From Takakia lepidozioides (Eukaryota; Plantae; Bryophyta), in the NCBI GenBank assembly GCA_030704615.1, contig CM060733.1:31124001-31188000 (forward strand): a stretch of DNA of 64,000 bases, written 5' to 3'. The translations under genes were made by a program, and so were the position numbers. The number at the start of each line of letters is the position of its first letter. The first letter of the stretch is position 1. The notes beneath the pieces were generated by a model. The model did not search any database and was not told where the DNA came from. It saw only the letters and a program-made list of their open reading frames with translations. Positions 19,074-61,099 of this stretch are shown in pieces.

Positions 19074-19144
19074 GGAATGGAAGCCCGTGGCATTTTTGTA
19101 GGGTTTGTTTCCCTGTTAGGCTTGAAGTCGTTAGGATCGTAGAG

Positions 19145-23980: not shown

Positions 23981-24699
23981 TGCCTGGTGTGAGTGGCACA
24001 AATGCCCCACCGACCATGACCACATTTCCTGACTGTTTAGACAAAAGATAGCATAAGCTCAGGCCTGAACAAGTTGCTTACACTAACAAATGGTCCGATG
24101 AGTGATTCTTGGACGACACCTAGGCAACATTACCTAGGGCCCCTGCCATGAGGAGGCAAGAGTAAATTAGTTGGGAGAGACTGGTGTTCCCAGCAGCTTT
24201 GACAATGAAACACAAATGAAACAATAGAAGAAATACCTTTGCTTCAAGAAAATCCGAACTCTTGTGAATCCTTGGAGATTCTGACAGCCTGAAAAGGAAT
24301 TTCAACTAGTGAGTGGTCACAAATGCCACATGTGAAAACAATCCCCCACTATTGACAACAAATGAGCAACTCATCTAGTCATTCCATCATCAACCATTGA
24401 CAAGTCTCTTTATTGTTATGCAATCTGCTGAGAGAGAGCGAGAAGTATAAATTAGACTAAGCCTGCCTACAGTTTCACATCTTGAATATTATCCCATGTT
24501 ATCCCACAGGGCACAGCTCCGGCACCTCAACAATCAGTTCCAGAGTAACAATGCAATCTTATAAAAAAAAAAAACAGCGTGGCAGGGGAAGAGAAGGAGC
24601 TGGAGTGGGAGCTGGAGGGTGGGGTGCCTGAGACATCTGTGCGTAGGGGAGGACGACGTGCGGGCTCAGAGGTAATTGCATATTCATTTCCTCTCAACT

Positions 24700-27546: not shown

Positions 27547-30500
27547 ATGAGTGATGAAAGAGAAGCTAGACGCCAGAGATATTCAGCAAAAAGAGAAAGC
27601 TATCTGAAAGCTAATTATCCATATCTTTGGGAGAGAGGAATAGACATAGGGGAATCATCTGGACCTCTCACGCCATTAAGATCAAAGAGTACATCACCCA
27701 TTCCAGAAGAACTAGAGTTGGATGCCACTCCTTTTGTTTCTTTGCAAGAAAGATTAAGGGAATTGGTACGGGAAGAAGATCAATCACGAGGTGAAAGATC
27801 TGAGGTACATCCCTGGATAAAAGATTTGACGGAAATCTTTGATAAGAGTTGGCATGGAATACCAAAAGCAGGAACTCCAATTTCTGAAGCGGAAGGTTAA
27901 GGAGGAAGAGAGGATGTGGCAGAGCCAACGGAGAGTTCAGACTATCCAACACCATTGCAGTTGAGTTACATGAGTGAAGAAGAAACCCAAGGGCAGAACT
28001 TGGAGGATGAAAACAGAGAGAAGAAATTGGAAGAGGAAGAATATGAAGAAGTAGACCCAACAGCTGAGGTTGAGACTACAACCAGGACATCCCAACCCGT
28101 TGGACCTGGATCAAGTGGAGCACTTGGATCACAGGCCAACGAAGGTGTCGGCTCAGGAGGATCAGGCGGGCTGCCTGGATCTGGCTCTGGGGGGACATGG
28201 AGTGTGGGAATTAGTGCAACTGAAGCTGGGAATACTGTGAATATCGTGGGGCCGGAAGCAGGGAGTGCTCAAGGGCCACCACTTGGTGGAAGATCCACCA
28301 CAACTACAACAGGTCCTGAAGGACCAGCACCAGCAAGGGTGCCAGCACCTGTCAGTGGGCAGAAGGTAGGGCCACAGATGGCGTTACAACCAACACGGGC
28401 AAAACCACCTTTTCCAATATATTCAGGAAAAGGGGATCCCGATGTACACATTAGCCAATTTGAGCACATGTGTATAGTGAACAATGAGAATGGCGATGAT
28501 GCCAAGATGAGATTGTTTCCTTGTTCACTTATCAAGAAAGCAAGTGAATGGTATGCAAGATTCCCTGATAATCATTTCCTAACCTGGAATGGCTTGAATA
28601 CAACATCCCGAAATAGGTTCAGGACAAGTAAAACAAAGGATGAAGTGTATGGAAGTTTACAACAGTTAAAGCAAAAGAAGCATGAAACTGTTGAGGAGTA
28701 TAAGGAAAAGATGGAATTGATGATGAAAAAGCTGGCTGCAGTACCAGCACCCGGTTTACAGAAGACTTGGTTTGTGAGTGGACTAAGACCAGAGTTGCAA
28801 AAGAAAGTGGATATGTTACCTCATAATACAGTGGAGGAGGCATTTGAAACTGCAAACAGAATTGAGCAATTGGGAATGCTCAGGAGAGAGAAAAGGGATG
28901 ATGAGGACTCTGAGGATGAGTCAGATGAAGAAGAAGAGCAAGAACTAAAAAGGAAGAGTAAGAGAAAGGAGAAATTGAAGAGGGATAACTATGAGAAAAG
29001 ATTGGAAGAAATCTTGAAGAAGTATGCCACAGAGGCTGCAACACATTGGAGGAAGGGTGTATGGTGTGCAAAGTGCCAGAATGAAGGCCATACCACCACT
29101 GAATGCCACATGAAGGAGAAACACTGTACTATCTGTAAAATGGATAACCATTCTACTGAGAATTGTTACTACAACAGAAGGACAGCTGCTAGAGAACCTA
29201 GGCAAGTAAGGGTGCATCAGGTGCAGCCCCAGCCAAGAAGAAACAATGATCAGGACCACTATGGTAGGTCTGGTGGTTATAACAATGGCATGGAAGGGAG
29301 AGGTAATTCAAGAGGGAATTACCAAGGGAATTCCAGAGGCAACTATCAGGGTAATCCAAGGGGGAATTACCAGCCCGGGAATCAGGATTACAGAAATAAT
29401 CCAAGAGCAGACCAAGGGCGAGGACCCAAAGGTGAAGAACTGTGTTACTATTGTAATCAAGCCAGGACATCGCAAGGCAGCCTGTTCATTCTGGATTAGA
29501 CACCAGAATGAGATGAGAGCTCCTGTGAATGAGGGCCCAGTGGTGGCAGCTCGCATGGTTAGGCCATGCGTTGTACCAGAAGTAAGTACAATGATAGTAA
29601 CAAGAAGTAAAGCCAAACTAATACCTCCAGTAGTAGAGGAAGAAGATGATAATGAAGGTGGCAGTGATATGCCTGAAGATGATGAGGCTTGGAGAGATGA
29701 GAAGGAACTGCACAAGGAAGTGGCAGATACCATAAGGGAAATGCAGAAGAGTACTGATATTCCTGTGGCAGATTCCTGTGATTCTGATGGAGAAGAAGAA
29801 GTGAGTGAGGAGGAAAGGAAGAAAGAAGATGCAGACATGCAAAGTAATGAAGAGACTTTGGCTGAAGTAATATGCCAGACCAAAGCAGAAATTACCATTG
29901 GACAGCTATTGGCTGTGGCACCTTATTGTAGGCACAGGCTGTATCAAGCAATCAATCGAATTGCCCAGGAGACAGGAAACACAGACCTGAACAGCAAGGT
30001 GACCAGTTATACTGTGAAACCGGAAGGGTGAGAAACAGTCATGGACTTTGATGATTCTATGCCAGTAATCCAATTGAGAATTGGAAGCACAGAACTAACT
30101 GATGTACTGATAGATGGAGGTTCTGGAGTGAATATCATGACAGACCAATTGAGAAAGAAGCTTGGTCTAAGTAACATGAAACCAGCCCCATTTACAGTAA
30201 CAATGGCAGATCAAAGAAGTGTACAGCCATTGGGATTAATAAGAGGAGTTAAGATACAGATACAGAAGATGATCTTTATGATCACAGTAACTGTGTTAAA
30301 GATGGATGAAGTCATGGAGGCTTACTCCTTATTATTGGGACGTCCGTGGCTGAAACAGACCAGGGTATTCCATGACTGGAATTCTCAGTTACTAACCGTG
30401 CATAATGGGATACACGAGATACAAATTACCACAAAGAAATCTAGTAGATTACCTGCTACAAGAAGACCTCGAGGAGTCATAGAGTATGACTGGAGAGAAG

Positions 30501-33500
30501 GACTGGATGAGGAGCAGGAAGCTACCCTGTTTGCTGCACACCCAGAGTGGGAGCAAGTTGCAGAGATGCGGCTGGAAAGCCTAAGTTGTTTAAGAGGTAT
30601 CTGCTGTGGTGTAGTGACAGCAACACCAACTGAAGAGGAAACCAGCAGTTACCCATCACATTTCTATGAAGAAAGAGAAGGAGAAATGGAAATCCTAGAG
30701 GAACCAGCCACTGTGAGCTTACAGGATGAAGTGGTGACTGGTTGGACAATCACAGCTGATGAGCAGGTGAGGGAAGTGAATGTGGGAACTAAAGAGGAAC
30801 CGAGGATGGTGAAAGTAGGAGCTGATTTGGAGCCAGAATTCTTTGAAGAAGCTAAGAGCTTGTTCATCAAATACAGAGATGTATTTGCTTGGAGCTATGA
30901 GGATCTAAAAGGGATACCACCTGAAGTCTGTCAGCATAAGATTGAACTGGAACCAGGGTCAGTACCAATCAAGCAGGCGAGGTACAGAATGAATCCCAAC
31001 TACGCACAGAAGGTTGGAGAAGAGATCAAGAAGTTGGCTGAGGCTAAGTTTATATCCCCAATAGAGTATACAACTTGGTTGTCACCCATTGTTATAGTTC
31101 CCAAGAAGAATGGTAAACTAAGAGTATGTGTGAACTACAAGAAGCTGAATGCTTGTACGAAGAAAGATCCTTTTCCTTTGCCATTCACAAAAGCAGTATT
31201 GGACACTGTGGCAGGCCATGAGATGTACTCATTCATGGATGGTTTCAGTGGTTATAATCAAGTGCAAGTGGCAGAAGAAGACCAAGGAAAAACAGGTTTC
31301 ATCACAGACTGGGGTGCTTATGCATACAAAGTCATGCCCTTTGGACTTTGTAATGCACCAGCGACCTTTCAGAGAGTGATAAGTGAATCTTTTCATGAGT
31401 ATCTGGATGATTTCATGCAGGTGTTCTTGGATGATTTCAGTGTGTACAGCTCTAAGAATGAGCACTTGCATAAATTGGAGTTATGCTTGGCCAGATGCAG
31501 GATGAGAGGTCTGGGCCTGAATCCAGAGAAGTGTACTTTCTGTGTGAACTCAGGGGTGCTTCTGGGACACATTGTGTGTAAGAGGGGACTTCTTGTGGAT
31601 CCCAGGAAAACAGAGGCCATTAAAGCCTCTCCACCACCAGTGAATGTTAAGAGTCTAAGGAGATTCCTTGGGCAAACCAGTTATTACAGAAGATTTGTCA
31701 AAAGGTATGCACAAATAGCAGCACCATTGAGCAAACTTCTGAAGAAAGATGCAGTGTTTGCCTGGACAGCTGAATGTCAACAGGCGTTTGAGGAACTTAC
31801 ACTGTCAGTAACAACTACACCTGTGCTGATTAACCCTCACTGGCATGTAGTATTTCATGTTCATTGTGATGCGTCAGGAGAAGCGTTGGGAGCGGTGTTA
31901 GCCCAGAATGTTACAGGAAATATAGATTCACCTGTGTACTATGCTAGCAGGTTGATGAACAGTGCTGAAAGGAACTATAGCACAACTGAAAGAGAAGCAT
32001 TGGCAATGATTTATGCAGTCAAGAAATTCAGGCATTACCTATTGGGAAGAAAGTTTATGTTTTATGTGGATCACCAGGCTCTGATATATCTGGTGAACAA
32101 ACCTTTGATAAGTGGAAGGATAGCGAGGTGGTTAATAATCCTGCATGAGTTTGAGTTCGAAGTTATTTACAAGCCTGGCCGTTTGCATCTTGTGGCAGAT
32201 CATTTGTCACGACTAACAACATGAGAGGCAGCCACAGGAGTGGACGATCAGTTACCTGATGCGAGTTTATTTGTAATGGAGGTGCAAGGAAGTGCAGATG
32301 AATGGTTAGATTGGCAGTGGCCAATCAGATACTACCTTACTCATGGTCAATGCCCACCTAGTTATGGTAAGGAGCAGAGGAAGAGAATCGCTATCAAAGC
32401 TCTACCTTACACTATGGTAGGGAGCAGAATGTATAAGCTAGGACCTGATGGAGTACTAAAACGATGCTTGTACCACCATGAAGTAAATAAAGTTTTGGAG
32501 GAAGTTCATAAAGGAGTGGCTGGAGGTCATTGTGGAGAAGAGACTACCAGTAGAAAGATACTACTCGCAGGTTACTGGTGGCCTACTTTGTTCAAAGATG
32601 TACACAAGTATTGTCAGAGTTGTGATGAATGTCAGAGGCTGGGACCTTTGCAGAGATCTGGGAAATGTCTTTGCATCCTACAATGCCTACGGAACCATTT
32701 CAGAAATGGGGACTAGACTTTGTTGGACCAATTAACCCACCAGCCAAGAATACACAGAACAGGTACATAATTACAGCCACAGATTATACTACGAAGTGGG
32801 TGGAAGCTAAAGCTTTGAGGGACAACACAGCCAAGTCCACAACAAGGTTTCTATATGAGAACATACTTACACGATTTGGCTGTCCCTTGGAATTTATCAG
32901 TGATCAAGGAAGTCACTTCATTAATGAGACCATTGAATTGTTGACTAAAGAGTTCATGATTGTGCATAGGAAAAGTACAACATATTACCCACAGGGTAAT
33001 GGGCAGGCAGAGGCTACCAACAAAATACTATGTACTATCTTGGCTAAGATAGTCAATGCAAACAGAACGGATTGGGATACAAAGCTGCTGACAGCTTTGT
33101 GGTCATACAGGACTTCATATAAAGTCACCACTAAGTATACACCATTCCAATTAGTTTATGGTATGGAAGTCTTACTTCCAGTGGAATTCCTGTTACCTAC
33201 CATGAGAACGGAATGGGGAAAGAGAATGGAATTGCAAGATTCCATTAAGGTCATGAAACATGAATTATACCATGTAGAAGAAGTACGTGCAGATGCAGCT
33301 AATAATATGACCAGAATTCAGATGAAGAGAAAGGAACAGTTTGATGAAGGCAAGTTAAAGACTTTTAAGACGGGGGATTTGGTTCTATGGTTACAGAAGA
33401 AAGGAAAGATTAAAGCTTCTAAGCTTAAATCACCATGGAAAGGACCTTATGTCATACAAAAGATGTATGATAACAACACCGCCATGTTACAAACCATTAA

Positions 33501-33927
33501 CAAAGAGATGCTGGGAAGAGTCAATGCTAATAAGTTGAAGGGGTACACTGGTATCCATGACAAACCATTGCAGCATGATTTGCATGTTAAAACGCAAAAG
33601 AAGTCATGGGCTGCACCCGTGATACCAACGGAGTATGGAACACTTGACGCTAGGTCGAGCATATATGACCAGGGCGGGCAGAACAAGCGAGAAACAGCCT
33701 ATCACAGCCCATCACGACGTGACACAGCCTATCACAGCCCATCACGACATGACACAACATATCACAGCCCAGCACGGAGCAATACAGCCTATCACAGCCC
33801 ATCAAAGCGTGACACAGCCTATCACAGCCTATCACGGAGCAGCACAGCCTATCACAACCTACCACAACGTGTCACAGCCTATCACAGCTTACCACAGTGC
33901 ATCACATCCTATCACAACGTACCATAG
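27547..33927 (+). pseudogene. gag-pol polyprotein (Gag, three Zn knuckles, PR, RT, RNase H, IN), disrupted
   Basis: Gag (YSGKGDPDVH..LFPCSL..ASEWY), CCHC x3, PR LIDGGS, RT FLDD, RH CDASG, IN HHCC and core (WGLDFVGP, SDQG, QAE). In-frame stops end at 27900, 30031 and 32224; frameshifts at ~29460 and ~32660. Confidence 0.95.
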
Positions 33928-33960
33928 TATGACACAGCCTGTCACAGCTCAACACAGCCT
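33690..33960 (+). repeat. 30-bp tandem repeat at the integrase C-terminus (TAYHSPSRRD-like units)
   Basis: About 8 units of acagcctatcacagcccatcacgacgtgac. Confidence 0.9.
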
Positions 33961-34455
33961 ACTAGGGTTACACAATCCATAGAATCAGTAACAGGTGGAC
34001 GCACATTAACTTTAGGAAAATGGCCGACGGAAGAAAGGACGGAAATCAGTTTAAAAATAGACACGTGGAAGTCAGGGCGCGACACACAGCTGAGAAGGAA
34101 GTGCAAGAGCAGGTGTCATCAAGAAAGAGGACAAGAATGGCCGTCAAAGTACCTACTTAGCGCGTCAATTCAGATGAATGGCGGGCCCATTAATGAATAC
34201 GGAAAAAGGGGAACGGAACAAACGGCAAGTACAGAAAAGCGAAATTCTTGTCACATGTGTGATCCTAGTGGACAATCCAGCAGGGAAAGTCCACTAAAGA
34301 AAATTAAATCTAAAATCCAGTCACAGCAGATACAGCCAATCAAAAGCCAGAGAAGGGATCAAGAAATTGGAGGGAAATTAGGCGCAAGAGTCGGCGTCGT
34401 TCTAAGTAACGGGCGTCGCGAAGGGACAAACCATCAATGCGATAGCTTTGAAGCT

Positions 34456-37400
34456 ATGGAGGAACTAACAGACTATACGCTTGCAATACTACTTACGCAG
34501 TGGCATAGGGACGAAACAACAGAGCGGATCTTTTCTCTTGAGCGATGCTTGCAAGCCCCGCAGGCTTACAAGAAATTACCCATAGCTTTTTGTGGCAACC
34601 ATACGTTTATGCTTTGTGCACTACAGGCATTTCTGCAGTTGTTACAGCCAAAACATTTTTGTGGGTCTGAAATGAAGAGAGTGAGAGGAATGGAGGAAAT
34701 CAGGGTGAAGAGCACCACAATTCTGCAGAAACAAACGATTGCTACCCCACAGGCGATACAGATACTGAAGGAGCTGAGATTGCAAGGATTGCAAAGCATG
34801 GATTGGACATTGAACCATAGACAGTACATGTTACAATTCTTGCAGAACTTTGAGCCAAGGACAGGAACAACAACGGTGAAGGGAGTTGAATTAGTAATTA
34901 CTTCCCCTATACCTCCAGCAATTGTTTCGATTGCCAGCAGGTCAGGTGCATGTGGAGGAGCACAGGGCAAGACTGCAAATAGGGGACTTATTCCAAGAAG
35001 GGAGTTTCTTTAAAACTCAGGGTTATGCTTGTACCAAGGCCATGTACCTAGGGCTAAAGGAGGTAGGCCAGGTATTGAACGTTCTGTTTGCCATGAAACA
35101 GAACCAACAGTATTTGAGCAGATCCTTCGCGGAGGAAATACTCAAAGCCCTGAAAGGACAAGAGGTAGAATGGGCGGACATAATGTACAACGCACTGGTA
35201 GAGGAGATGAAAAGATTACAAGGTACTGCCGCAAAGTCTCCTATCATAGTGTCTGGCCCAATCATTGCTCAAATAATTCTTGATTCTGGCATACTTGATG
35301 CGCAAGAAAGAAAGGAGATGGGAGTGTTTGAGCCAGAAACCACTGCAATGGAAGAGCAAGGCTCTTCACACAGTGAGGGTGGACTAGCAGGGCAACCCGA
35401 GACTAAGAGGCAGAGACGGGGAAAGACTGTAGTGGCGGATCCACTGGCTTCACGGATTCCGCATGATAATGTTTCCCAAGCTCATGTGCAGGAAGGGGCA
35501 CAGCAGCACAGAGAACTGCTATTACTGGAAGCAGGACCTTCAGAGAGGGAAGAGGAAGTTACTTCAGTATCACAGCCATCACAACCAGAGGATCGGCTTG
35601 TCACAAGGTTACCACAAGTTGTCCATGCAGTTCAACCAGAAATAATTGATTTGGAAAAAGAAGGGTTAGATATTCCAACTACAGAACAGATAGTGGCAGA
35701 AATTGAGAAGGGGGACCTTCTCTATGAATATTCTGGTCTGATCAAGGAAACAGAGATTCCAGAGGCGCAACAGATGCCCAAGGGAAATCCTGAGATGCAT
35801 ATAGTACACACACCTGTGACGGAGGTACCACAGGTAGAATGCCAAGACACTGCAGCACCGGTGACGAATGAAGTGGTTCAGGAAAAAAATCTGGTGGGAC
35901 AATGGCCTGAGTGGTTCGTAAGACATCACACTGTTGAGGATCAGGGAGAACAGCAGCAAGCTCACCATGATGACCCTCAACAGGCAATGCTTATGAGTTC
36001 CATAGGCAGAACACTTAATTTGTTGGGGACTTATGTCAAATCCCATGTTCCAACTACCCAATTGACAGCCTTGAGAGAGGAACTCAGGAAGGAGTTTGAG
36101 GCTCGACTAGCCACTGAGTGTGCAAACAAAGTCGATGAAGAAGTCACTCTCAAGATGCAGCAAGACTTGGAGAATACAGAAGTGGCTTTGCAATTGGCCA
36201 AGCAACAATTGATTGAGGCAGGCCTCGCGCAAGACCAATTGCACGAAGCACATAAGCAACAGCTATACCAAATGCAGGTGAAGCATGAAAGCAAGTTGCA
36301 AGAAGTGAATGCACTACATATGGAGTTGCAGACAGTGCATGACAGAATGGCCATCTAATGTGCTACACTCACAACTATGCTTGACCAATCTACAAAAGAA
36401 ATAAACAGTCAAGCGGAAAAATGTACGAAGGCAGAAGAAGAGAATGTTGAGCAAATGAAACTCATTGTCGACATGAATAATACAATCTGTCGCAATGAGG
36501 ATACTTTCAAGCAATACAGGCAGGTTGAAGCTGACCAAGAGAGGTACATTCTGGAGTTGCAACAAACGGTCATAGCCAATAGAAATGAAATCTCGGTCAC
36601 TAACAAGGCTTGGAAGGAAGCCAATAATCTACTTGCTGCCTATGCAAATTTGGTTGAACCTCATGCGAAGCGCATGGAGGCTTTACAACAACAGTTAGAT
36701 GTGTACAAACAAAGAGAGGAGCACACTCTCAGAGGAACCACAAGCAACTTGGTGGATAACCACCTTATGCAGGTCTGGTTAGCACAAGGGCCAGTGGAGG
36801 GCAAAGCACCACGAAAGCTCACCCAAAGCGAGATGAATGAGCTCAGACTGCAAGTGCAGAATATTGCCACAATTACTATAGACAATGTCTATAGTAGAAT
36901 AGTAGAGTTACAGGAGGATGTAGACGGACTGCAGACTCAAGTGGAGGACCTCACTTCAAATATCGACAAAAGAGTCTATATACCTCAAGAACAGCTAATG
37001 GCTTCTTATTTACAAGCCAGAACTTTGGCTTTTCAGTCTTCACAGGAGGTGCAGGAGATGCCAATGATACAAGAGTCAATACCACCAACACCACAACAAG
37101 TCACTGTGCCAGTAGCTGACCCTGTTGTTACTACAACCACACCACAGCCACCACAGCTTGAGGTATGGGGCAATGCTGCTTTTAACCCACCTAAAACTCC
37201 AGCTGCAAGGGAGTACAGTACGGCTATGATTATGCCCTTCAACCAAATTCCCATCATGTTGGATTTGGCTTGGAAAGAATTTAGTCCTCCGCAGTCATTG
37301 GCACATTACTACCAAATCATGCGCATTTGGCTGCCAGTGGCAACTAGGACTAAAGTTCTTCCGAACAATCGACCAATTCATGATCATCACTTTGCACAAT

Positions 37401-38227
37401 ACTGGCATGAGGCAGGTACAATGTTGAGAGAATTAATTGCCTTCCAAGTTGTACATGGATTCATTTATACCAAGACCAAGGAGGTAGCGAGTATTGTCAT
37501 GGGATGTGGGTTATACTACGCTGCTTGTTTTCTAGTACGTTATCACATTGAGCAGCAAAAGATGCAATCGCGCTTTCTGAGTTATTCCAGTGGGGATCAT
37601 TGGGTCTTACCTTCAGTACCACCTCATATGTACCTATATGAGACAAATATTATGATGCAAAAGGATTCTCAAATTCGTTCATGGTTTCAAGCGGCCTGGA
37701 ACAATTTGTCAACACAGAAATTCGGCATTGATGATATTTTTTATAAGGGACATGAGGCATGGAAATACTTGCACAGTGCACAAGTAATTGGTACCCCACT
37801 CACCTGGACAGACAAGGAGCTCAGTGTCTTCACCAATTTTGCCGTTCAGCGTTTACAGCAAGTTTTAAAATATAAACTTCCAGACATGGTAGGACAACAT
37901 TGTATGCCCCAGAGGATTCCACAAAAAGTTCGACAATTAAAACACCTGAGAGGCGATGAGGATTCTGATACAACTGTTTCTTCAGCAGACTCTTTTGACA
38001 TGGCAGAAGACTATGCAATTCAGATGGCAGAAAAGAAGCGACGGGGGTCTCCTATGCCTGAAAGATTACCTCGATATCAGCCTCCAGAGGGCCTTACATA
38101 TCCAGGTAGTGTTCAATCATCTCCGTCAACCAGTGGCAGACCTCGGGCTCACACACAAAGTCCTTCACGAGACTCTCAACGTCAGAAGGGTGCTTACTCA
38201 CAAAGGTTTGCTAATCCCAAACAGTAA
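34456..38227 (+). pseudogene. Large extra 3' ORF (~1,250 codons when joined) of the LTR element
   Basis: ORFs 34174-35013, 34922-36358 and 36377-38227. The last two share a frame across one TAA, and there is a frameshift near 34910. Central part is coiled-coil-like. Confidence 0.75.
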
Positions 38228-41029: not shown

Positions 41030-43545
41030 ACGGAGCAGAGCTGGCATGAGTTTCTTAAAGATCCTTCACGATGGTGGGACAACCGCAATCGCAATGTGTG
41101 GTTTTTTTTAGTGTACGATGTGAAGAAGTTTGTCCATCCCGCAAATGTGGGTTGTTGGCTCCTGTTAGTACCATGATTTGGTATTCTTACTGATGTTTAC
41201 AAGGTTCTTGGGAGAGTTAGCTTGGTCTTAGCGGGCCGTGTTTCAATCTTTGCCCACTCAGCTGCACCGTGGTGGTTCTCACTGACCAATCCGACATTAC
41301 CTAACCACAGACACAAGCAGCACACACAAGAGGTCCTCTTGGGTTCATGGTCAGTCAAATCCTCCATGGGACATGACACAAGGTCGAGGACAATATGGTT
41401 TCGACTAATGCCACCCTCCTTGCTGAACTCTCTAAAGAAACAAGAGTGCCACACTGTGGCTCTCCATTTTTTCATGTATGCTTCGAAGGAGACCTTCGGT
41501 GCTGTCATAGTGATGCCATAGTCAGCCAGCTGAGTATGCAGAACCGACCGTGCCCTTTCTTCCAACTGCAAAACAATTCAAATGCAAGAATGAACCCAAA
41601 AAAAAACACAGCGAATGTGAGAGGCAATGGAAAGAGAAGGATAGGAAAAGAGAAAAGAAAGTGACACAGGAAAGGACATCACACCTGGCTCCAGTAAGTG
41701 GCCTTGTGAAGCCATGTGTCCAGCACATTGTCACTGACAAGAATGACACGCTAGGTCTTTTTCTCTTTCTCCGGCCTGGGGAACATGTGGGTATCCCTAA
41801 CTGTGGGATCGGAGTTCCATATCTGTAGCCACTTCACCTTCTGTTCTGAAGACACAACGGCGGTAGACAACCTGTGTAACTTCTCCTGGGCCATCTCTGG
41901 CTTGCCTGGCTTGTTATAATGGTTTTTTTTTTATCTCCAAGAGAAACTGCGATCCGAATGATGGGTCGGCAATTCTCAACTGCTTCACAAAAGCACTCAT
42001 TATAGTCCTTCTTGTAGCGGTCATCTCTTTCTGGATGTGACTCTCAACCCCCTTTGCTGTCCTTCTCTCCTCAGGGGTTGAGCTGTAGTATTCCAGTTTG
42101 CCACGCTCCCCTGCATCTACAATGTCTTGCTGCTGAGGGCACCTTCTTCTTTGACTTATTTCAGCCTATTTTGCCCTCTCATCAGAGGAAGCCCTGATTT
42201 TGCATATTGAAGTCGGTAAGTTAGCTTGTTGGGTGGATCTGTGGTGGTTTGGAGTGACTTTGATGTTACTCAGGCATTGTATCAGAGAATGGATATCGTC
42301 TTCATGCCGTTGGCATGTCGGACATTTACTATCTCCTTTACCTCTCTACATCTGTGCAAAGATAGACTCCCCAACTTGAGTTTAAATTTCAAGTCTGGTG
42401 TCAAGGGTAGAGGTAGGCCCTCCAGATCATCCTCAAGGTCCTCTATGTGCCCTTATAATCAGGTATGGGGAGAGGTGTACTTCAACCTGACCACATCACG
42501 TTGGTTTGTGGGGGCAAAGCATGTGCGAGCATGGCAGCGGGCTGGAAAAGGGCAAAGACTTCCATGGCGACATCTTCAAAGCGCGAACTGTACCAGGTAT
42601 GATTCTGAGCACTGCCCTGGGGACATGTATGCCAAATGCGAGCATGCTACCTCTGAAGGCGCAAAGTTCCTAGGTGACATCGTCAAAGCTGGAATTGTAC
42701 TAAATATCATTCTGAGCACTGCCATACAGCACATGTATGCCAAATGTGAGCCTGGCAGCCCTAGAACTGGGCAAAGAGGTCCATGGTGACATCGTCAAAG
42801 CTGGAATTGTCCCAGATGTGATTTTGAGCACTGCCCTCATGGACATGTATGCCAAATGTGAGCCTAACAACCTTGGAAAAGAGAGCAGAGGCCATGGTGA
42901 CATTATCAAATTAGCTGGAACGTACCATATGTGATTCTGAACACAAGTTTAGGCGAGCGTGGCAGCCCTGGAAAAGGGAGTAGAGGTCCATGGTGACATT
43001 GTCAAAGCTAGAACTGTACACCAAATCTGATTTTGAACACTGCCTTGGTGACATGTATGCCAAATGTGAGTCTGATAGCTGTGGAATGGACGGACAGGTC
43101 CTCGGTGATGTTGTCAAAGCTGAAATGTACCAGATGTCATTTTGAACTCTGCTCTGGTGGATATCTATGCCAAATGCGAGCTTGGCAGCCCTGGAAAATG
43201 GAACAGATCCATGGTGTCAATGTCAAAGCTGGAATTGTACCAGATGTCATTTGAACTATACCCAGGTGAACATGTATGCCCAATGCGAGCCTGACAGCTC
43301 TAGGAAAGGGCACAGAGGTCCATCATAGGTCCTGCATGGATAGATGGTCAATTGGAAGCTGCAGAAGCAGCGGCACAATTGATAAAATCAGACACTGCTA
43401 ATCAAGGTACATTTGGATCGCGGTCTGAGACAATATCTTTCGGGAGTCCATGATGCTTGAAGACGTGGGTGAAGTAAAGTCGCCCCAACACATTTCACCT
43501 GTTTTCGGCCCTAAATTTTCATGTTGAATTCTACAAGATAGCTTG
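41030..43545 (+). pseudogene. PPR pseudogene pieces: N-terminal module (41240-41400) and tandem L/S-motif fragments (42480-43325), interrupted by foreign sequence
   Basis: Same upstream and N-terminal modules as 14298-14620. SLAALELGKEVHGDIVKAGIVPDVILSTALMDMYAKC units. LINE piece at ~42355-42450 (-). Confidence 0.8.
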
Positions 43546-49200: not shown

Positions 49201-51398
49201 CAGGAATAGTAGAGTGTGGCACCGAAAGCACCAGCCTCAAACCACCTTCGTCATTGGATAACCAACAGTTGTTCTTGTTTGAAACTAACTATGGGGAATG
49301 ATCTTAATAAGCCTCATTGTGTATGGCAATGTCTTAGGCCTATATCTGCAATGTGACAAGACATACAGACGAAACATGCCATCAGGTGTTCCAGTTTTTG
49401 AGGAGGGATAACATTGCCATGACAGTGCGCCAGAGAGTAGATGTACTCAATGACCATTCCTAGATTGTTGAAAACAGTAAGTCCTGGGTGGGCTACGACA
49501 CACCCTCCCCAGGGATGCATGAGGAGGAGCTGTCATGGGAAGTTAACCGACTAGAGAATAAAGCTTAAAATTCCTTTGGCACTTGCAAATGGCCAATGAC
49601 AACCCAATTACTCTGGAATGACTCTTGGTTGCATGAATTCTAGTTGAGATCATTAGGTCCTCTACCTGAACACAGATGTAACACATGAGGGGGGGTACAA
49701 AAAGAGAGAGGGAGAAGGAGAGCAGCTAGATATACCTCAATCCTGGAAACAAGACCTGCAGGATTCCATTCTGAAATTCGAATTTCAATTGGCTCCTTCT
49801 CCTGGTTGATCTGTGATCCAGACATTCTCATTCAAGGTCAGCTTCATTAGCCTCCCGACCCCAACCTCTCTCTCGCCTGTGGATGTCATAATGTCTTTCT
49901 TCCTTTATCTCTGACTCTTTCGGTACACTATGCGCTGCTGTGTCCCGTGTTACTTTGTCTAATGCTTTGCACAAACTATAACAAACACACACCCCAAGAT
50001 ACAGACTAACCACAGTCCTTGTCACTTCTATTGAAGTGGCACCAGAAATGCTTCATAATTACATTACTACCACTTGTCTGCAGATCCACTGGTGACTTGG
50101 CTGCTTGCAATTGTTGTTAGGGAGTGCAGCAGTAGCAGAAAATCAAGGGCGTTGTGAGTCAATCATGTAGGTTCCTCACTCGCAGTGTAGAAAAGTATAC
50201 AGGATTCCAAAGTAGAGGAGGCACAAACCTGCCGGACGCGTTCCCATGCAAGACGGCTGGCAGCTTTGCGAGCGGAGAGCAGCGGCCTCCCACTGATACT
50301 GTTTGCAAATACCTCCATTGTTAAGACAGTCCCCACATCAACAATTAGGGGTCCCTTTGATAGAAACCTTAAAATCTCATCATCATGCACGACCCGAGGC
50401 TGGCCCATGGGTGGGACCGGATCATAATCTTCTTGCCGATCCAGACTGCCTTCCCTTGGCATTTTCCACGAGACACTGTCCAACTCACATTTATCAAGTG
50501 GCATTGCGTCCTTAAGAAGTATATGCCCTAGTTTCTTAGCGCCAATGTCTACGTCCAGCTTGCCTTGGTTGCCAGAGACCACCACCCCAACTACTCGGTC
50601 TCCAGCTTTGGGATTATAGTACTCAAGCTCGTCCTCCACTTCTTCCTCACCTATGGAGGTAGTTTTGCTTTCAGCATGGGTTTGATATCCAGAGAGACCA
50701 CTCTCCTGTGAAATGTCTTCGTCCATTTCTTGGGTCTGTTCTCCATCAATTTGAAACTGAGAGAACAGACGTTGATACATCCTTCGGACTGTGTCCTGTT
50801 CTTCAGTAGGAGAGCTCGTAGACAGGTCTTGTGCTTGAATTAAACTCTCTGAAGACTCTGATGACTCGCCTGTTAGAAACCTGTTGTTTACCTCCTCCTT
50901 TTTATCTGCAACAATCTCTGCTTCAGTTGCAGGTGCCTCAACACTGTCGGTCACAATCTCTTCACCATCTCCACACTCAACACCAATTTCACCTCCAGGT
51001 AATGAGCTTGAATTTGAACAGCCCTCTTCCCTGGCCAATTCTGGCTCAGCTGAAGACAACCTTTCGGCGTCAACATCTTCGACCGCCATACTGCCATTCT
51101 GTGTGACCTGGGTCTGATACAAAAGGCTAACATTCAAACTTTCGGGACTGAGCTCTGAGTACGATCCTTCGAATTTTGTCCTCTCCGTACTTGCTGCATA
51201 TATCCGAATATGAGTATCCCTCGCCACCTTCTTGTTTAATACTAACGCTATCTTTTTCTGGCTGGCCGCGCGGCCCCTCCATAGTCCAAACGATGGGGGG
51301 CGTGCTATTGTAAATCGATTGTTTTCCACATTGTATCCACTCTGGTTACGCCAAAGGGGTGAGCCCTGCCACAGCTGGACGCCTGAACGGGCTAACAT
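46204..51398 (-). CDS. RLSB: Plastid S1-domain RNA-binding protein (RLSB/PDE338/BSF-like). Exons ~51398-50229, 49810-49736, 49017-48940, 48605-48525, ~48203-48104, ~47880-47756, ~47080-47028, 46362-46204
   Basis: YYNPKAGDRVVGVVVSGNQGKLDVDIGA, GRPLLSAR..AWERVRQ, EPIEIRISEWN.GL..RIEG.RAFLP, GLVHISNI, RVFSEAEEMAKAYR..ANWDWLDF. GT-AG boundaries and a transit-peptide-like N-terminus. Confidence 0.85.
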
Positions 51399-52221: not shown

Positions 52222-55200
52222 ATGGCGAGTAAGATCAAACGCAAGCTGCGGATCGCCATCTGCCATCCTGATCTTGGAATTGGTGGAGCAGAGAGGCTGG
52301 TAGTGGATGCAGCCCTGGAGCTAAGGGCGCGGGGACATCACGTCCATGTTTTCACGGCCCATCACGATCGGAACCGCTGCTTTGAGGAGACGATCGATGG
52401 TGGGTGACTCTTAGCAAGGGAGGGTTGGGTTGTGGGGAATGAATGTACACATTGACTGCCTGTGAAATTTTTACTTGGCAAAGATGTATCTATGAGGTCA
52501 TACGGTTGTGTTGCCTTCCAGAGCTGGTTGTGGGGGTTTAAAGAGGGACAGAGAAAGGGATGAGAGAAGGAAATTAAGAGATTAGACTGAATCTATGAGT
52601 TGAAAGCGCTCTCATTTTTGTCAACTTCAAACTTCAGTGGCGTAGTATCTCCCACCAAGAATCACCATTGACATCGCGGTGCTGGGCCGTGCAGGCAGTT
52701 TTCCTGTGACAGTTTATGGGGACTTCATCCCGCGGCATGTGTTCTACAGGTTTCATGCCTTCTGCGCCTATTTGCGCTGCCTCTATGCGGCAATGTGCAT
52801 GGTGCTCTTGTGGCCCACGTTCGATGTTGTCTTTGCTGACCAGGTGTCGGCTGTTATACCCGTACTTAGACTCCAAAGGTCGACCAAGGTAAGAGCTCAT
52901 ACGCCAAGCTCCTGATTTCTGCAGCAGGTTAATGACTTCTAACTCGGAGCGTAGGCTTAGAAAATTCAAGATCTTCTTATGGACGTTATCCTCGTGACGC
53001 CTGTGTCTTACCGTTTCTTTCTGCTACCCTGGCTGATCCGAGTTGTTCAAATATGTAAACTCACATGTGGAGATCCTGTTGTGCCTAAGGTTGTAAGGCT
53101 CAGCCATGATGATCAATACTTACACCCCTCTTGGCAATGCAAGTCAATGGTGGGAGTTAGACGCCTTGAGTGATTGACACCAGAATTGGAAGACATCAAA
53201 AGTGGGCCTTACAATGTACAGATAATGTTCTATTGCCATTTTCCGGACTTACTGCTTGCCAAACATACGACACTCCTACGGAAGCTCTACCGGGCACCTC
53301 TGAACTGGGTAGAAGAGACCACCACAGGTACGGCCCTCTCATTGCTTAGGGCATATTATGTCATCTTGCAGTACTGCTCAGCTCTCATTTTCATGTGCAG
53401 AAGAGCACCTAGAACAACCAAAGGCCTTGCTAGCACTCTGTAATTCTTATGCAGACTAGCTCAAGTGCTGGTGTAAACCGCGCTTCCCCTTCTGTCTCCT
53501 CTCTCATTGATCTCAAGTATCTGGCAGTGTATGACAGTTGCTGAGGTAAGAGGGAGCTTGGCAACCTGGCGCCTGGCCACCACCAGTTACTTCCTGCTGG
53601 TTCCTGGTCCTCACCAGTCAAGCGCTCTTCGATGCAGGCATGGCAGATTGTGTGTTGGTCAACAGTAAATTCACCGCCTCCACATTTGGGACCACCTTCA
53701 GGCTTCTCCAGTCCCGTGGGCTTCAACCGGTTGTTCTTTACCCAGCTGTTGATGTTCAGCAATTTGACGCTTGCGCAGAGGCACTCTCACATAGTGCACG
53801 TGTTCCAGAAATAAGTGATCTCCCTTCTAATGGGTAGGCTGCATCTTTCATCTGTCTCTGATGTCCCTTCGCTGTCCGTTGCAAGATCTAGATGCCTGAC
53901 CTCTTCAGTCATAGTGTGTTAATTTCGGGCAAAGTCTCATGTGGCCGCAGTTGGCTATTGCCTTTTGTAAGGTATCTCATAAGAATTGGAAAACACATTT
54001 GCTTCACAGATATACGAAAATATTTTTGGAGGGACTGCTGGTCAAAAAAATCTGGGCTAACATTGTGCTTGTTTAAATTCCCAGGCAAATATTCCTGTCT
54101 ATCAACCGATTTGAGAGAAAGAAGAATATTGGCCTAGGTATCTCTGCTTTTGCATCTATGATCAAACAGCAGGAGAGTTCTTCCTCTGAGCACACCAGTG
54201 TACCTGTCCAGAATGTTCGGTTGGTTGTTGCAGGTGAATTTTCTCATCCTCAGTGATTCTAGTAGTCTGTTGCAGGGGCAGGAGCTAGTAATTGTGGTTT
54301 GAAATTGTCAAAAAGGAAATTTAGTTTGTCTTGTTGTGCATCTACATGTAGGTCTTCAGCATGCCTAACCAGCATTCATAGCGATCTTCATGGGCCTTCG
54401 CTTTTGATGATTTTTTTTTGCCTGAATTTTGTCAGATTATGCTTAAGTTTTTGAATGATTAGAATCCCAGGTCTATGCAAATGTTTAACTTGCTCTTATC
54501 CAACATTGTGTTCACTAGTCACACATATGTCACAGGTATTCATGGACTTTTTTCATAAGTTATCTTGTTCTCCCAGATTGGCAGTGTATGCTGAAGTTCC
54601 TAGATGATTTTTGTCCCACATAAAATCTGAAGGATGTTCTTATCCAACCTCGTGTCGTTTGGTCGCAGATTAGTCCTTAGAAATCATGCAATCTGACAGT
54701 GGACTCATACGAAACAGGGGGTTACGATAAACGGCTGGCTGAGAATCGTGAGTACCTGCAGGAGCTCAAGAATCTGGCAATTGAGGAGGGTGTTATGGAG
54801 CGGGTGGTGTTTCTGCCCTCATGTTCGACAGCCCAAAGAAATGCCTTATTGGCTGCTTGTATCTGTGTCATCTATACTCCCATGGTAATCTCTCTGTCTC
54901 TCTCTTTCTGCCCTTTGCTACACCCAATCTGACTCGCAGTGGCCAAAGTGTGGCGTAGAGCTCAATGCTCGAATCAACATTGTGTTTCTCTCTCTAGTGG
55001 CATATTCGGGCTGAGTTTCCAGACCTGCTAGTCATGAAACCTGTATCTGAGTGACAGGGCTTGAATTGTTCTTGAATGTTTTGTGCGAAACACCCTTTCT
55101 TTGGTTGCCTGTGCTCAGTTGTATAGTTCATACTCAATGGGGGTCCTATAGCATGGCAACATAATCAATGAAGGCTTTCTTGAAAAGGATTGTGAATGCC

Positions 55201-55634
55201 TCGGTTTGTAGACTTGCAAACATGTTCCTGCAACCATCATCTCCCCAAAGGTTACTGAGCTGTGGTTGTATTAAGGAGCTTTTCAGCACTGTCTTCATGG
55301 TTTGCAGAATGAGCACTTTGGGATTGTACCTTTGGAGGCAATGGCAGCCAAAAGGCCTGTTGTGGCTTGCAACAGTGGGGGCCCAAAGGAGAGCATCCAG
55401 CATGCCAGCACTGGGTTTCTGTGTGAGTCGACACCCAAAAGCTTTGCTTCTGCCATGGCCTTGCTGCTGGGAGATCCCCACAAGGCAGAGACAATGGGCA
55501 AGGCTGCTAGAGAGCATGTCGAGCGGAACTTCTCAAGACAAGTGTTCGGTGCTCATTTGAATGAAATCATATATGACCTTGTTGAGACTGACCCATCAGT
55601 CCTCACCATGAGTAGTATGCCTCAGGATTTGTAA
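52222..55634 (+). CDS. ALG2: Alpha-1,3/1,6-mannosyltransferase. Exons ~52222-52399, 52695-52888, 53222-53327, 53638-53834, 54085-54233, 54718-54884, 55308-55634
   Basis: [77 protein letters not shown]. Confidence 0.95.
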
Positions 55635-56114
55635 GGTTGGTTTTAAGTCAATTTGAACTTATTTTGGACTTGCTTCATCATTTCTACTATAACTTCAGTA
55701 CCTCACTATTGATTCTAGTGCTGCCATACAGCTGAGTCACACCCGGGAGCTCCTGCAGCCACTTGCTATGATGTCTGCATTAATGTCGATAAACATCTGT
55801 ATGATTAGGGGATTTCATTGATTCTACTCCGAAACATTTGTGTGTTCTTGCATTTTGCCTTGAGAGATGTGCATACATTTTCAATCTTCTTGAGAAATGT
55901 ACCTTATGGGTCTTGAATCCTGGTTTCTCCCAACATAATGAGCTGATAACAAAGCTGTTGAACTTGCATGCAAGCAACACCAATCAGGTGGCAAGATTTA
56001 AGCACACTTTCTAACAGTTATGTCTTTCAGATCTTCAATTTCCTCACAAGAATTGGAAGGAAGCCATGAAAGTCATGTTAAGAGGACCAAGGAAAAGATA
56101 ATCCTGGACTTTTA

Positions 56115-56172
56115 CATGAGGCTGTTTCTCCATGAGGCTGTTTCTCCATGAGGCTGTTTCTCCATGAGGCTG
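56115..56172. repeat. 16-bp tandem repeat (CATGAGGCTGTTTCTC) x3.6
   Basis: Perfect direct repeats. Confidence 0.9.
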
Positions 56173-56780
56173 CACAAGAGGAAATAGATGTCATTATGTA
56201 TTAATGTTCAGTACCCAGTCACTATGATAGGATGTTTGGTACCCAGTCACTGCAAAGCAAATTGTGGGCTTTGGCCTTCTTTTCTTCAATCTTTCTTCCT
56301 GCAAAATCTTGTCTTCCTTATTCACTCTTGGCATATGCAGAATGCTGAAGCATTAATGCCATCTTTTCATACCAGAAGAATGGGTTGATTAAAAGGTATG
56401 GTGGCAGACACTGAACATTGCTTCAGTGCTTTTTGAGCCTTGTAGCTGGTACATTGGGTGTTACCATTTCTCGTGGGAGATGGTGTATCTTATCTGTATC
56501 TTATCTGAAAGTTCCAGAAAATTCTGTGCACCTCTGCTCATTGGAGGCTGTGTGCTGCAGCCCTTTGTTGGTGATATGGATATGCCAGCAATCATTGCAG
56601 GAAGTACGCACTCTATGAGCCGCCCCATCAATTGGTGCTCAATAGGGTTCACATGTCCAAGATTCGCCTGGGGTAGTGTCACAATGGATGACACGCATCA
56701 TTCTTTTAACTTTACAAAAGATGATGAATTATCAACTTTCTGCCCTCATGCATGAAGTGGAGCACTTTCTTTGTTGCTTC

Positions 56781-59125
56781 TTACCAGTAATCACCACAAG
56801 AACAAACTCCATCTTGAAAGTGGTGAAAGCGGTTAGCGTCCCGTACGACAAGTGCACGCCCAACAACCTTGGAGATGAACTTGGTGGCAGTATGGCAGTC
56901 ACCACACACTCGAAGGTTCTTGATGATACGGAGAGGTGTTCCAGGGGGTGTGCTGATGAGCCCAAAAGCAAAGACCAACCTTTCACTGTGGTGGCAAAGT
57001 GAGAATTCCTTATACTTCTCCTCCACATCATGCAATACAAACTGTGTGTCAGGTACATACCCGGCTTCCTTCATTGGCTCAGACAATCTCTTCAGCTCAA
57101 ACTGGGCGCGGGGTCAATGGCCACAAGGCTACGGCAAACAACGTCTTATGAGTACAATCTCTTCAGCTCAGCATGGATTTCCCCAATTTGTGGATGTAAT
57201 TTGTCGTCAACAATGAATGTATGCACCTGGTTATTCACCTCAATGCAGCAGCACCCTGCCTTCTTTTGGATACCTCTCTCCTGCATCATTTTTCTCACTT
57301 TTGCAGTATCGTCCCACCTGCCAGCTGCAGCATAGATATTTGATAGCAGCACATAAGTTGCAGCATCTTGTGGATCCAACTTCAGAAGGAATTTCGTCGC
57401 ACGCTCTGCTACTGCTACATTGTCATGAATTCTGCAGGCACCAAGCAATGCCCGCCACACTGACACACGTGGTTCGATTGGCATACTGTTAATGAAGTTC
57501 TCTGCCTCATCTAATTGTCCTGCACGGCCAAGCAGGTCTACCATGCAGCCAAAGTGCTCCGCTGTAGGAGTGAGGCCATGATGTTGACTCATGGAACTGA
57601 AGTAGTGACATCCTTCATCCACTAGGCCCACATGGCTACATGCAGAGAGAACACTTACAAAGCTGACATCATCTGCCTTGAAGCCTTCCTGTTCCATCTG
57701 TTCAAATAGTTCAAGGGCATCCCTTCCACATCCATGCTGACCATATCCCGCCATCATTGAATTCCATGAAACCACGTCTCGTTGACCCATATTGTCGAAC
57801 ACTTGACGTGCATTCCTAAGGCTCCCGGAGTTGGCATACATGTCAACAAGGGTATTTCCTAGAATGACATCTGCTGAAATTCCAGCTTTGATGATGTCAG
57901 CATGGACCTCTTTGCCCTTATCCAGGCCTGCCAGGTTGGTACATGCCTTGAGAACACAAAGGAACGTGACCTTGTTGGGTGACACCCCTTCCTGCATCAT
58001 TTGCTCATACAACTCAAAAGCCTCCCCGCCACACCCATGCTTGGCATATCCTGCTATCATTGCATTCCAAGAGACCACATCTCTTTGAGCCATATGGTCA
58101 AACACTTTACGTGCATCCTTCGTGCTCCCACATTTGGCATACATGTCTACAAGAGCAGTCTCGAGAACAGTATCCGATAAAATTCCAGCTTTCATGATGT
58201 CAGCATGGACCTCTTCACCCTTTTCCAGGGCTGCCAGGCTGGCACACGCATTGACAATGCAAATGAATGTGACCTTGTTGGGTATCACCCCTTCCTGCCT
58301 CATCTGCTCATACACCTCAGAAGCCTCCCTACCATGCCAATGCTGAGCGTATCCTGCAATCATAGTGTTCCATGAAACCACATTTTTCTGAGCCATATTG
58401 TCAAACACTTGACGTGCATCCTTCAGGCACCCACATTTGGCAAACATGTTGACAAGGGCAGTTTCTAGGATGATATCTGATGGAATTCCAACTTTCATGA
58501 TGTAAGCATGTACCTCTTTGCCCTTTTCCAGGGCTGCGAGGCTAGCACATACATTGAGAACACAAATGAAGGTGACGTTGTTGGGGGTCACCCCTTCCCG
58601 TATCATTTGATCATACAACTCAAAAGCCTCCACGGCACACCCATGCTTGGCATATCCTGTGATCATTATATTCCATGTACATGTATCTCGTTGCACTTCA
58701 TCAAAGACTTGGCGTGCATCGACCAAACTTCCACACCTGGCATACATGTTGATAATGTTGTTGAGCAGAAAGGCATTTGGCTGGAATCCGCTTTGGATAA
58801 TATGGGCATGCACCTGCTTTCCCTCTGCTAGGCCTCTGAGCTTGATGCACTCCTGAAACAGACAGACATAAGTTTCATGGTCTGCTGAAATGTCTTGTTG
58901 GTTCAAACTAAGTAGGGCCTCTTTCAGTTTTCCTGCCTGGCATAGGGTCCTCACATAGCCAAATTGTGCTTGACCCTGTATCATGGCAGCTAGCTCTGCT
59001 TTCAGCCAAGGAGGGTTGGAACAACTATCAATCCAAAGGACCTCCTTTGTGCGCTTATGTCTGAAGTCTGGTGATCTTGGACTTCTCTGTGAAAAATCAA
59101 CAGTGGGCAGCTGAGAGAGCAACAC
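56781..59125 (-). CDS. PLS-PPR-E-DYW C-to-U RNA-editing factor; frame broken at 57146 by a 71-bp insertion, leaving the DYW core (57082-56781) out of frame
   Basis: Uninterrupted 659-codon PLS+E ORF. Downstream HSERL..CGDCH..CSCGDYW* is intact. Start is uncertain: the first in-frame ATG is at 58984, and an acceptor near 59111 may indicate an upstream exon. Confidence 0.92.
57100..57153 (+). mobile_element. 54-bp LINE 3'-end insertion with a 17-bp target duplication
   Basis: ACAATCTCTTCAGCTCA at 57083-57099 and 57154-57170. 57095-57162 is the exact reverse complement of 12093-12160. Confidence 0.93.
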
Positions 59126-61099
59126 ACTAGGTTACAACTACCAAGCAGGGGATCACCTTGAGCAAGCTGCAGTCATGCCCTGCTAACAAGACCAACCAAC
59201 CTACTGATGGTAATCCGCACCCATGGTGATTTTTGGAGAAAAAGAGCAAAATTGGCATACCGTTAGCAAAGGGACATGCATTCCAGTCCATAAATACCCG
59301 CATCAGTCAGACCCATCCTTGAGAAAATTCTTTCCATGTCCTGGCCTCACCTTATCAGACCTGTTGTCCCACCACTGTGAAGGATCTGAGAAGAACTCCA
59401 GCCAGAGCCCATCTGTATTCATTTGGCCTGCATCAAACACAGCTTCCAAGATCCTTAGGAGGTCCGACTTATCTAAGTTTTTTTCTTGCAGTTTCCTTTC
59501 ACTTTATAGAGTCTCGTCCTTCTTTTCTTGCCGGAGTGTGACTACCAATGTAAGGGGGCTAGAGGATCATAATGTTGTCTTGGATGAGGCCTGACAATGA
59601 TTCTTCCGGCACAATTCCATGCATCATTGAACGTTAGCCATCACTTCGTGGGCTGAGTTCCCTACGCTGGAGGATAAAAAGCCCACAATGGATCCGAGAC
59701 TACTACGCCCTCCAGGGTACTTCATTGCCCATGATTGCAGGTAGGAGAGAAATCATCTGTCCTGATCAGTGTGGCTGGATATAGTTGCTATGCACCACTT
59801 CAGAGAGGACCACTGCAATGTGTGTGCCAGAAATGCTACAACCACCCCAATTCAATGGGGAAAAACCTACCAGGTGTTTGCCGGGACGATAGCTATGACA
59901 GGGCTCGACCATAGCCAACGGAGATCCCGTTGCAAACTCTAGAAGTGTTGCGAAGTATTGAAGTACCGATTCCTCTCTTATGCACGGAATAGAAAGAACA
60001 TAACTATGTGAAACAGTTTAGCTACTTGAGCAGATACAAATGGAGCTGATGGAAGTCGAACAACTTGTCTCGATGACACTCCTGTATGGCCAGGCACTGA
60101 ATTCCTTCGACCAAAGATACAGTTTCTCCTGGGATGGTGGAATGTGGAGCCTGGATCCTTCACCGCAAAAAGAAAAAATAGTGCACGAAGAATTCCGTGT
60201 CTATACCTTTCTCCGTTGTCCTTGGAAGCTGGGGAGCCATCACAGCCATGACCCGCAAAGGCCTGAAGTCCGAATTTGCCGAGGTAGATAACAATCTCCC
60301 CTCCACAGCCTGTCCCGTTACCCTGTTAGATGATGAGGTGTTTCCCGCCCGTTCACCGTAAAGAGAAGGAACGGCCTTGGGTATGGCCTCTCCCTGCGGG
60401 CTGAGGAGAGCAACGGGGCGCTCCGCCATCCCTGCGCCTCCTACCACAGAGCTGGAACATTGCTCCGACGCAGCATTGGCAGCCGCTCATTTACACTTCT
60501 CTATTGCGAGGCACTCACCTTGGAATGCTTCAGACTGCATGGTGCGCTTCATTGTTGCCAGAAACAGCCTGCCATCTCTCATGGCAGTTTTTCAGAAGGA
60601 GGCCGATTTGCCGTGGCATTTCTGATGCTGGCTGGAATGTCTCAAGCCAGCCCCCAACTATTTGGGAGTCGAGGAATGTTCAAACTGATACTTTCTTCCT
60701 ATCATGGTCTCTAGTCTCTAAGTTCATATCTTCCTTGCAGTGCAAATTCAACAGCAATTGGGCACTTCAACTACAAGTATCCATTGCCCGCAGTGTGGTA
60801 GTCATTGCCTGTGTTGCTATGCAGGGGTTACTCTGTCACTTCCTTATGATGTATGTTTGTCATAAATACCACTCTCATCGTCTTGGCATCCAGTAACTCC
60901 TACTAGGTTTCCTTGTATTCGCTACTGGACAATTGTTATCCTGCAGGTTGTTAGTTGTTACCTTGCTGGTCGCATTACTCATTTGGGAGTGCCTTCACTC
61001 TCCTCTATGAGTACTTATCAGGTGATTACCAAGTAGTGGTGTAGTAGTATATATATGGAGCCCTCTAGCTCAGTTCATTTTATCAATATAGGTTGATCA

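Follow-up and report, generated by a model that had tools for sequence, protein, structure and literature searches.

Pentatricopeptide repeat (PPR) proteins of the E+ type are truncated DYW proteins that, in angiosperms, use DYW partners in trans (PMC11121751; PMC7611903), and the angiosperm E+ factors, such as CRR4 with DYW1 and those acting with DYW2 and NUWA, are conserved, selected forms with dedicated partners. In maize, the emp5-4 allele of the PPR-DYW editing factor EMP5 has a Mu element inserted in its DYW domain (Liu et al. 2013, according to PMC11121751), and editing is reduced, not abolished. A DYW domain may also be truncated as an editing factor decays after losing its target, as described for DOT4 and CRR21 (PMC6424221). 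The moss Takakia lepidozioides has 2,016 PPR and 750 DYW genes (PMC13386178), and we examined one PPR-DYW gene of this species in a stretch of 64,000 nucleotides (assembly GCA_030704615.1, contig CM060733.1, positions 31,124,001 to 31,188,000 of the forward strand), referred to here as the window and numbered from its first letter. The gene lies on the minus strand and is interrupted by a short piece of a long interspersed nuclear element (LINE). An earlier note on this DNA, made from the letters alone, had proposed that this piece turns a DYW editing factor into an E+-like protein, as either a very recent conversion or a null allele. We conclude that the interruption is probably a young, extremely 5′-truncated LINE insertion in the last exon of a PLS-class PPR-DYW gene, leaving a loss-of-function or weak allele.

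As in emp5-4, a transposon inside the DYW domain leaves a product "similar to a PPR-E+ protein" (PMC11121751), but the two cases differ in several respects. The maize allele is a Mu DNA-transposon insertion from a mutagenesis stock of an angiosperm, in which editing was measured, whereas the Takakia insertion is spontaneous, consists of a 54-68-bp LINE tail in a non-seed plant, and itself supplies the stop codon, in antisense. In emp5-4 the insertion sits where the gating domain starts, directly behind the two β strands of the PG box; here it lies 14 residues into the next helix. The closest precedent is thus emp5-4, and the idea of an E+-like product is legitimate, having an experimental analogue. 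In contrast to the angiosperm E+ factors, the locus is one interrupted copy with its deaminase core intact 60 nt downstream. We know of no trans-deaminase partner in mosses. The locus resembles DOT4 and CRR21 in the C-terminal truncation of a PPR-DYW gene, which is a step of decay when the factor is unneeded; decay of those genes was deduced from orthologues across species, with the fate of the target known, whereas here the mutational event itself is visible. The insertion also resembles extremely 5′-truncated LINE insertions and short retro-copied 3′ ends, such as the short mRNA-derived pseudogenes of PMC2831318, in which the last tens of template bases are inserted with a target-site duplication and microhomology at the 5′ junction. 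It differs from those cases in that the element comes from a plant of bryophyte grade, has no poly(A) and has a body that ends in ...ACAATCTCT and leads into a short tandem tail, and in that priming was apparently through 9 nt of complementarity between target and RNA.

The 17-mer ACAATCTCTTCAGCTCA is present twice on the plus strand, at 57083-57099 and at 57154-57170 (unstranded features, 17/17 identical), with 54 bp between the two copies. These 54 bp (57100-57153, plus strand) are LINE sequence only, and they form the middle of a longer match, since positions 57095-57162 are identical at 68/68 bases to the reverse complement of 12093-12160, with the match breaking off sharply at both ends. 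The 68-bp LINE match overlaps the duplication by 5 bp on the left (GCTCA, the last 5 bp of the left copy) and by 9 bp on the right (ACAATCTCT, the first 9 bp of the right copy, matching the 9 nt that close the LINE body ahead of its tandem tail). The insert measures 54-68 bp and the target duplication 17-3 bp, according to whether the microhomologies are counted with the LINE or with the target. The 54-mer was found at only two places within the window and in 0 of 100 shuffles. The LINE sense of the insert is the plus strand of the window and is antisense to the PPR gene; the insert comprises the sense strand of the last 14-17 LINE codons, the LINE stop (TGA, 57149-57151) and 12 nt more, and it encodes the end of the LINE open reading frame (ORF), with the plus-strand ORF 56999-57151 and the LINE ORF 12742-12104 sharing a C-terminal peptide. 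The 71-bp period formed by one duplication copy and the 54 bp was unreported by Tandem Repeats Finder; its copy number is just 1.24. The earlier note had described a 17-bp duplication around 54 bp, 68 bp identical to the LINE end at 12093-12160 and microhomology at both junctions, and all three descriptions held. Its term "3′ end" is accurate to within a short tail, as the copies in the window carry CTCTAYGG units after the 68 bp.

The donor family is represented by a 5′-truncated retrotransposon without long terminal repeats (a non-LTR element) at 12093-13505 on the minus strand, whose last 68 bp (12160-12093) are identical to the insert with its microhomologies. This 12-kb copy contains the C-terminal part of a reverse transcriptase (RT) with a FADD box (13505-12981), which matched RVT_1 below the Pfam cutoff (E 1.4e-4) and was placed with RVT_1 clusters by Atlas at 0.97, and a C-terminal ORF (12742-12104) with a Cys-His knuckle. 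The C-terminal ORF had no Pfam match even at E 10, and Atlas gave a weak zf-RVT lead; a PDB search with the LINE returned matches only to R2 proteins, at E ~1, which is not significant. To judge where the element ends, we used an older copy of the 3′ region, ∼79-81% identical, at 9257-9442 (plus strand). After ...ACAATCTCT, the 12-kb copy goes on ATGG CTCT ATGG and the 9.4-kb copy ACGG CTCT GG. The 3′ tail (12085-12100; 9431-9444) is a short 8-mer tandem (CTCTATGG CTCTATGG in one copy, CTCTACGG CTCTGG in the other), not poly(A). A second 5′-truncated fragment of the family, at 11595-12092, directly adjoins the first at 12092, tail to body. The copies in the window form a 3′-anchored set of varied lengths, as expected from 5′ truncation. 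Copies elsewhere were seen in sequencing runs, for which reads were available as Logan contigs, which break in the repeated LINE tail. In four runs, similarity of the other genomic and RNA copies to the insert was lost at 57160-57164, with heterogeneous continuations (agreement 0.39-0.58), whereas on the 5′ side of the insert the same four runs gave a consistent LINE-internal continuation (agreement 0.72-0.95). This difference between the two sides places the insert at the very 3′ end of the element body. The LINE tail was abundant in the RNA runs.

On the minus strand, the host gene begins with a putative upstream coding exon (MNTDGLWLEFFSDPSQWWDNRSDK, 59351-59422), which has an ATG at 59422 and an open frame ending AAG|GTGAGG. 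The exon is followed by a candidate intron of 240 nt with GT-AG ends (GTGAGG...CTCTCAG, 59111-59350), after which exon B starts at 59110 in the frame of the main ORF; an alternative in-frame acceptor, tttttcacag|, would close the intron at 59087 (264 nt). The main exon as now read (57146-59110) encodes ∼15 PLS-type PPR motifs, E1, E2, a PG box, 14 residues of the gating helix, the residues YS and a TAA. The ORF containing it, 59125-57146, has 659 codons, with its first ATG not before codon 47, and ends in a premature TAA at 57148-57146, which is the insert-made stop that the earlier note had placed at 57146. In Pfam searches, the PPR array of this ORF matched PPR_2 (1e-79) and PPR (2.5e-74), and its motifs could be segmented into an initial S-L-S-like group, three P1-L1-S1 triplets (regular 35/35/31 residues), P2-L2-S2, E1, E2 and the PG box. 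The E_motif profile (PF20431) was matched over positions 1-63/63 by residues 567-629 (E 2.1e-21), and Eplus_motif over positions 1-22/28, the latter below cutoff (20.5 bits, cutoff 24; E 4e-4). The PG box, at 57265-57236, is of a "CC" variant that is common to one paralogue and the closest database fragment, P0139, and is therefore a family trait. The PPR code read from the P and S motifs is NN, TN, NN, TD, NN, ND, ND.

The DYW cytidine-deaminase core is stranded in another frame at 56781-57086 (minus strand), with an in-frame ATG at codon 5 (MKEAGY...). It is complete, matching the Pfam DYW_deaminase model at 93/93 positions (E 2.9e-44), and the motifs HSE (56990-56982), CGDCH (56906-56892) and DYW (56792-56784) are all present, in keeping with the earlier description of an undamaged core. 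When the 71 bp were removed in silico (one duplication copy plus the 54 bp), a single frame of 757 codons resulted, running through ...ELKRL| to DYW*; this read-through frame was checked by script only, and the two protein pieces and the exons were each searched singly. Aligned with intact relatives, the two protein pieces abut without gap or overlap. Of the features of the DYW subgroup to which the gene would have belonged before the insertion, the PLS array and E1/E2 are present, and the DYW domain is not in frame with the PPR array.

The 71 extra bases throw the reading frame off, and the antisense LINE sequence brings in a TAA two codons further on. The product is a PPR-E1-E2-PG-box protein without the deaminase core, which makes it E+-like in architecture, as the earlier note had it, with the break separating the E+ part from the deaminase core. 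The gating domain of OTP86 begins at a His after the two PG-box strands (PMC7611903), and the break lies 14 residues past the equivalent His (HPQIG...). The note's account of E+ proteins as truncated forms that depend on DYW partners in angiosperms agrees with the literature cited at the outset. Rescue by splicing was considered and set aside, as a by-eye search of the minus strand found no GT...AG pair that would remove the insert in frame.

An empty version of the site is preserved in a dead PPR-DYW paralogue in the window, in which the 17-mer is single (17413-17429, plus strand, 15/17 identical) and exactly 71 bp are absent. The paralogue aligns in two high-scoring segment pairs that overlap on the subject by the 17-mer, and the alignment has a 71-column gap. 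Likewise, several contigs of single-copy depth in the DNA and RNA runs are joined to 57154 with the insert missing. Because the paralogue and these contigs lack the insert, the insertion is derived and specific to this copy. The truncation is shared by no relative, as the 17-kb paralogue and several paralogous contigs are without the insertion and database relatives read through. In a protein collection without this organism's proteins no intact close relative was found, the best match of the 659-aa piece being ∼55% identical (Diphasiastrum) and that of the DYW piece 74-81% identical. The left flank with the duplication had 0 exact matches in metagenome contigs, and no exact 71-bp skip was present among the joints listed. 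With 0 differences in the duplication and in the 68 bp, the age of the insertion is bounded at ∼0.03 substitutions per site at 95%. Set against the LINE family, the insertion is young, but not necessarily "very recent": this part of the earlier proposal stood only as a loose bound on recency, at most ∼3% divergence.

The surroundings of the gene were examined for copy number and transcription. In the DNA run the intron and both flanks (56143-56757, and 59516 onward) have single-copy depth, and the coding parts are overlaid by thousands of contigs at least 95% similar. Such coverage suggests that the gene belongs to a large, young gene family and is not a transposon-borne copy. The lack of an ATG ahead of codon 47 in the main ORF had raised the prospect of a transposon-borne or 5′-truncated dead copy, which was set aside given the upstream ATG exon, the GT-AG intron and the single-copy flanks. 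Two runs, X5 and X6, can be recognized as RNA because their contigs splice the neighboring gene (54230>54715 and 54883>55307), a group-1 glycosyltransferase gene on the plus strand (54084-55839; Glycos_transf_1, E 1.2e-18). In both runs depth was zero over 59122-59318, with depth on either side, and DNA there is single-copy, which fits an intron; the depth over the exons may derive from paralogues. The locus is probably transcribed, because an X5 RNA contig of another genotype than the assembly (record 10, 407 nt, 3 differences) covers the unique stretch 56252-56658, a probable 3′ untranslated region (unstranded, single-copy) directly 3′ of the DYW stop, where the depth in X1 is ∼51. Near the locus, X5 differs from the assembly by 4 single-nucleotide polymorphisms. 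A joint at 58832-58980 was seen in RNA runs X5 and X6 only and is absent from the DNA run; the 147 nt skipped lie within the first PPR motifs, keep the frame and have non-canonical ends, and the joint could be a transcript of a paralogue or an unusual splice.

The structure of the insertion is consistent with target-primed reverse transcription (TPRT) with extreme 5′ truncation. A LINE endonuclease would have nicked the minus strand after ...AGAGATTGT, and the freed 3′ end would have annealed to the 9 nt ACAAUCUCU that close the LINE RNA body and served as primer for the cDNA, whose synthesis would have ended after about 54-68 nt. The second strand would then have been nicked up to 17 nt off and joined at the 5-bp microhomology GCTCA, giving the duplication. 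Two features expected of TPRT are present, namely co-linearity with the 3′ end of an RT-encoding element whose copies vary in their 5′ truncation, and a target-site duplication. LINE integration typically leaves duplications of this size, up to 17 bp.

Microhomology of 5 and 9 bp at the two junctions would equally be expected if the insertion had been made by break repair with template switching (microhomology-mediated, of the polymerase-theta type, or microhomology-mediated break-induced replication), in which a broken end would have copied 54-68 nt of LINE DNA or RNA via GCTCA, returned via ACAATCTCT and duplicated local sequence. Such a route would accommodate a true target duplication of perhaps just 3 bp, if all 68 bp are LINE, as well as an insert without a tail repeat or poly(A), and an identical template lies 45 kb off in cis. 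However, the copied stretch stops at the very point at which, in many genomic copies, the element body ends, a coincidence that is improbable for a random template and is demanded by TPRT, and the orientation and polarity of the insert are those that TPRT requires. Together with the LINE-like size of the duplication and the abundance of the LINE tail in the RNA runs, this makes break repair quite improbable in our judgement. A further alternative is that the 71 bp are an assembly artefact, absent from the DNA of the organism. No contig among those listed bridges either junction (57083-57170), so that it is the assembly that carries the insertion, and the best DNA runs, X1-X4, are probably from the assembly's own sample and hence not independent. 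Against this, a perfect 17-bp duplication around a fragment that stops at an element terminus is what a biological insertion leaves behind, and not a consensus or chimera error, and both flanks match single-copy X1 contigs without a difference; we consider an artefact very improbable. Further points weigh against a TPRT insertion that inactivated a functional gene. The window showed no full-length element carrying an endonuclease domain. The insert is without the short tandem tail (CTCTAYGG units) seen in both copies in the window and ends ...ACAATCTCT, the first half-unit of that tail, so that reverse transcription would have begun a few nt inside the RNA. On the side of the gene, no transit-peptide-like N-terminus was seen in the gene model; the model may be incomplete, with a further 5′ exon, or the gene may already have been inactive. 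Finally, we infer the loss of function here, and the comparable maize truncation emp5-4 keeps partial editing (PMC11121751).

This last point bears on whether the truncation represents a functional conversion, in which the truncated protein would work as a putative E+-type specificity factor with a deaminase borrowed in trans, either from another DYW protein or from the stranded core if this were somehow translated from its in-frame ATG. The position of the break would suit such a role, as it falls at the boundary of E+ and deaminase, with E+ positions 1-22/28 kept and the whole DYW_deaminase model downstream, and it has been proposed that E+ halves and DYW1/DYW2 complete one another's gating domains (PMC7611903). 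In emp5-4, with Mu at nearly the same place, EMP21 apparently supplies the deaminase for the editing that is kept (PMC11121751). The unique 3′ flank of the Takakia locus is transcribed, and with the stop in the last exon, exon-junction-dependent decay would not be expected. Set against these points, the enrichment of E+ proteins among early-diverging plants is found only in hornworts (PMC13386178), the truncation is unique to one copy and is not a conserved form, and an ORF lying downstream on a eukaryotic mRNA is unlikely to be translated. We therefore regard functional conversion as unlikely, and of the two outcomes named in the earlier note, a null allele or a hypomorph is the more likely. 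This is favored because the family is huge with near-identical members, so that the loss of one is likely tolerated, because the documented partners (DYW1, DYW2, NUWA and MORF) are described from angiosperms, with MORF confined to seed plants (PMC13386178), and because no relative shares the truncation. More specifically, the locus could be a just-born natural split of a moss editing factor, with the predicted E+ protein guiding editing and the deaminase acting in trans from a DYW protein or the stranded core, but this is a long shot.

Several other features of the gene and the window were noted. The N-terminus of the PPR-DYW protein (59422-58990, minus strand) reads ...LWLEFFSDPSQWWDNRSDK | (LPTVDFSQ)..., a motif split by the intron that resembles the "PDF motif" known from organellar ssDNA-binding (OSB) proteins. 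It recurs as PDYRHK in the paralogue at 14.4-15.1 kb. There is no Pfam model for the motif, and none of the papers searched combined "PDF motif" and DYW. Pieces of the PPR family litter the window, with further PPR-like fragments, 68-80% identical to the gene, at 22700-23982, 42490-43285 and 18149-19358. A Gypsy-type element occupies 27916-38227 (plus strand), with gag, protease-RT-RNase H and integrase ORFs, and the three more large ORFs that come after these, at 34174-35013, 34922-36358 and 36377-38227 (279, 478 and 616 aa), had no Pfam match. An ATG-started ORF of 411 aa at 50163-51398 (minus strand) also had no Pfam match.

An insertion such as this one is an ordinary kind of gene-breaking event, and one broken member is to be expected in a transposon-rich genome whose PPR family numbers about two thousand genes. 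The event is legible base by base, from the donor element, the duplication and the microhomologies to the untouched deaminase remnant, and it mainly illustrates that transposons prune the PPR family as well as spread it. If the empty allele still segregates, the two forms would be a natural allele pair with which trans complementation of a deaminase-less factor could be tested in a moss, which lacks the seed-plant helper proteins. If the split factor were true, the division between E+ and trans-acting DYW proteins could arise in one transposon hit, without MORF, NUWA or DYW2.

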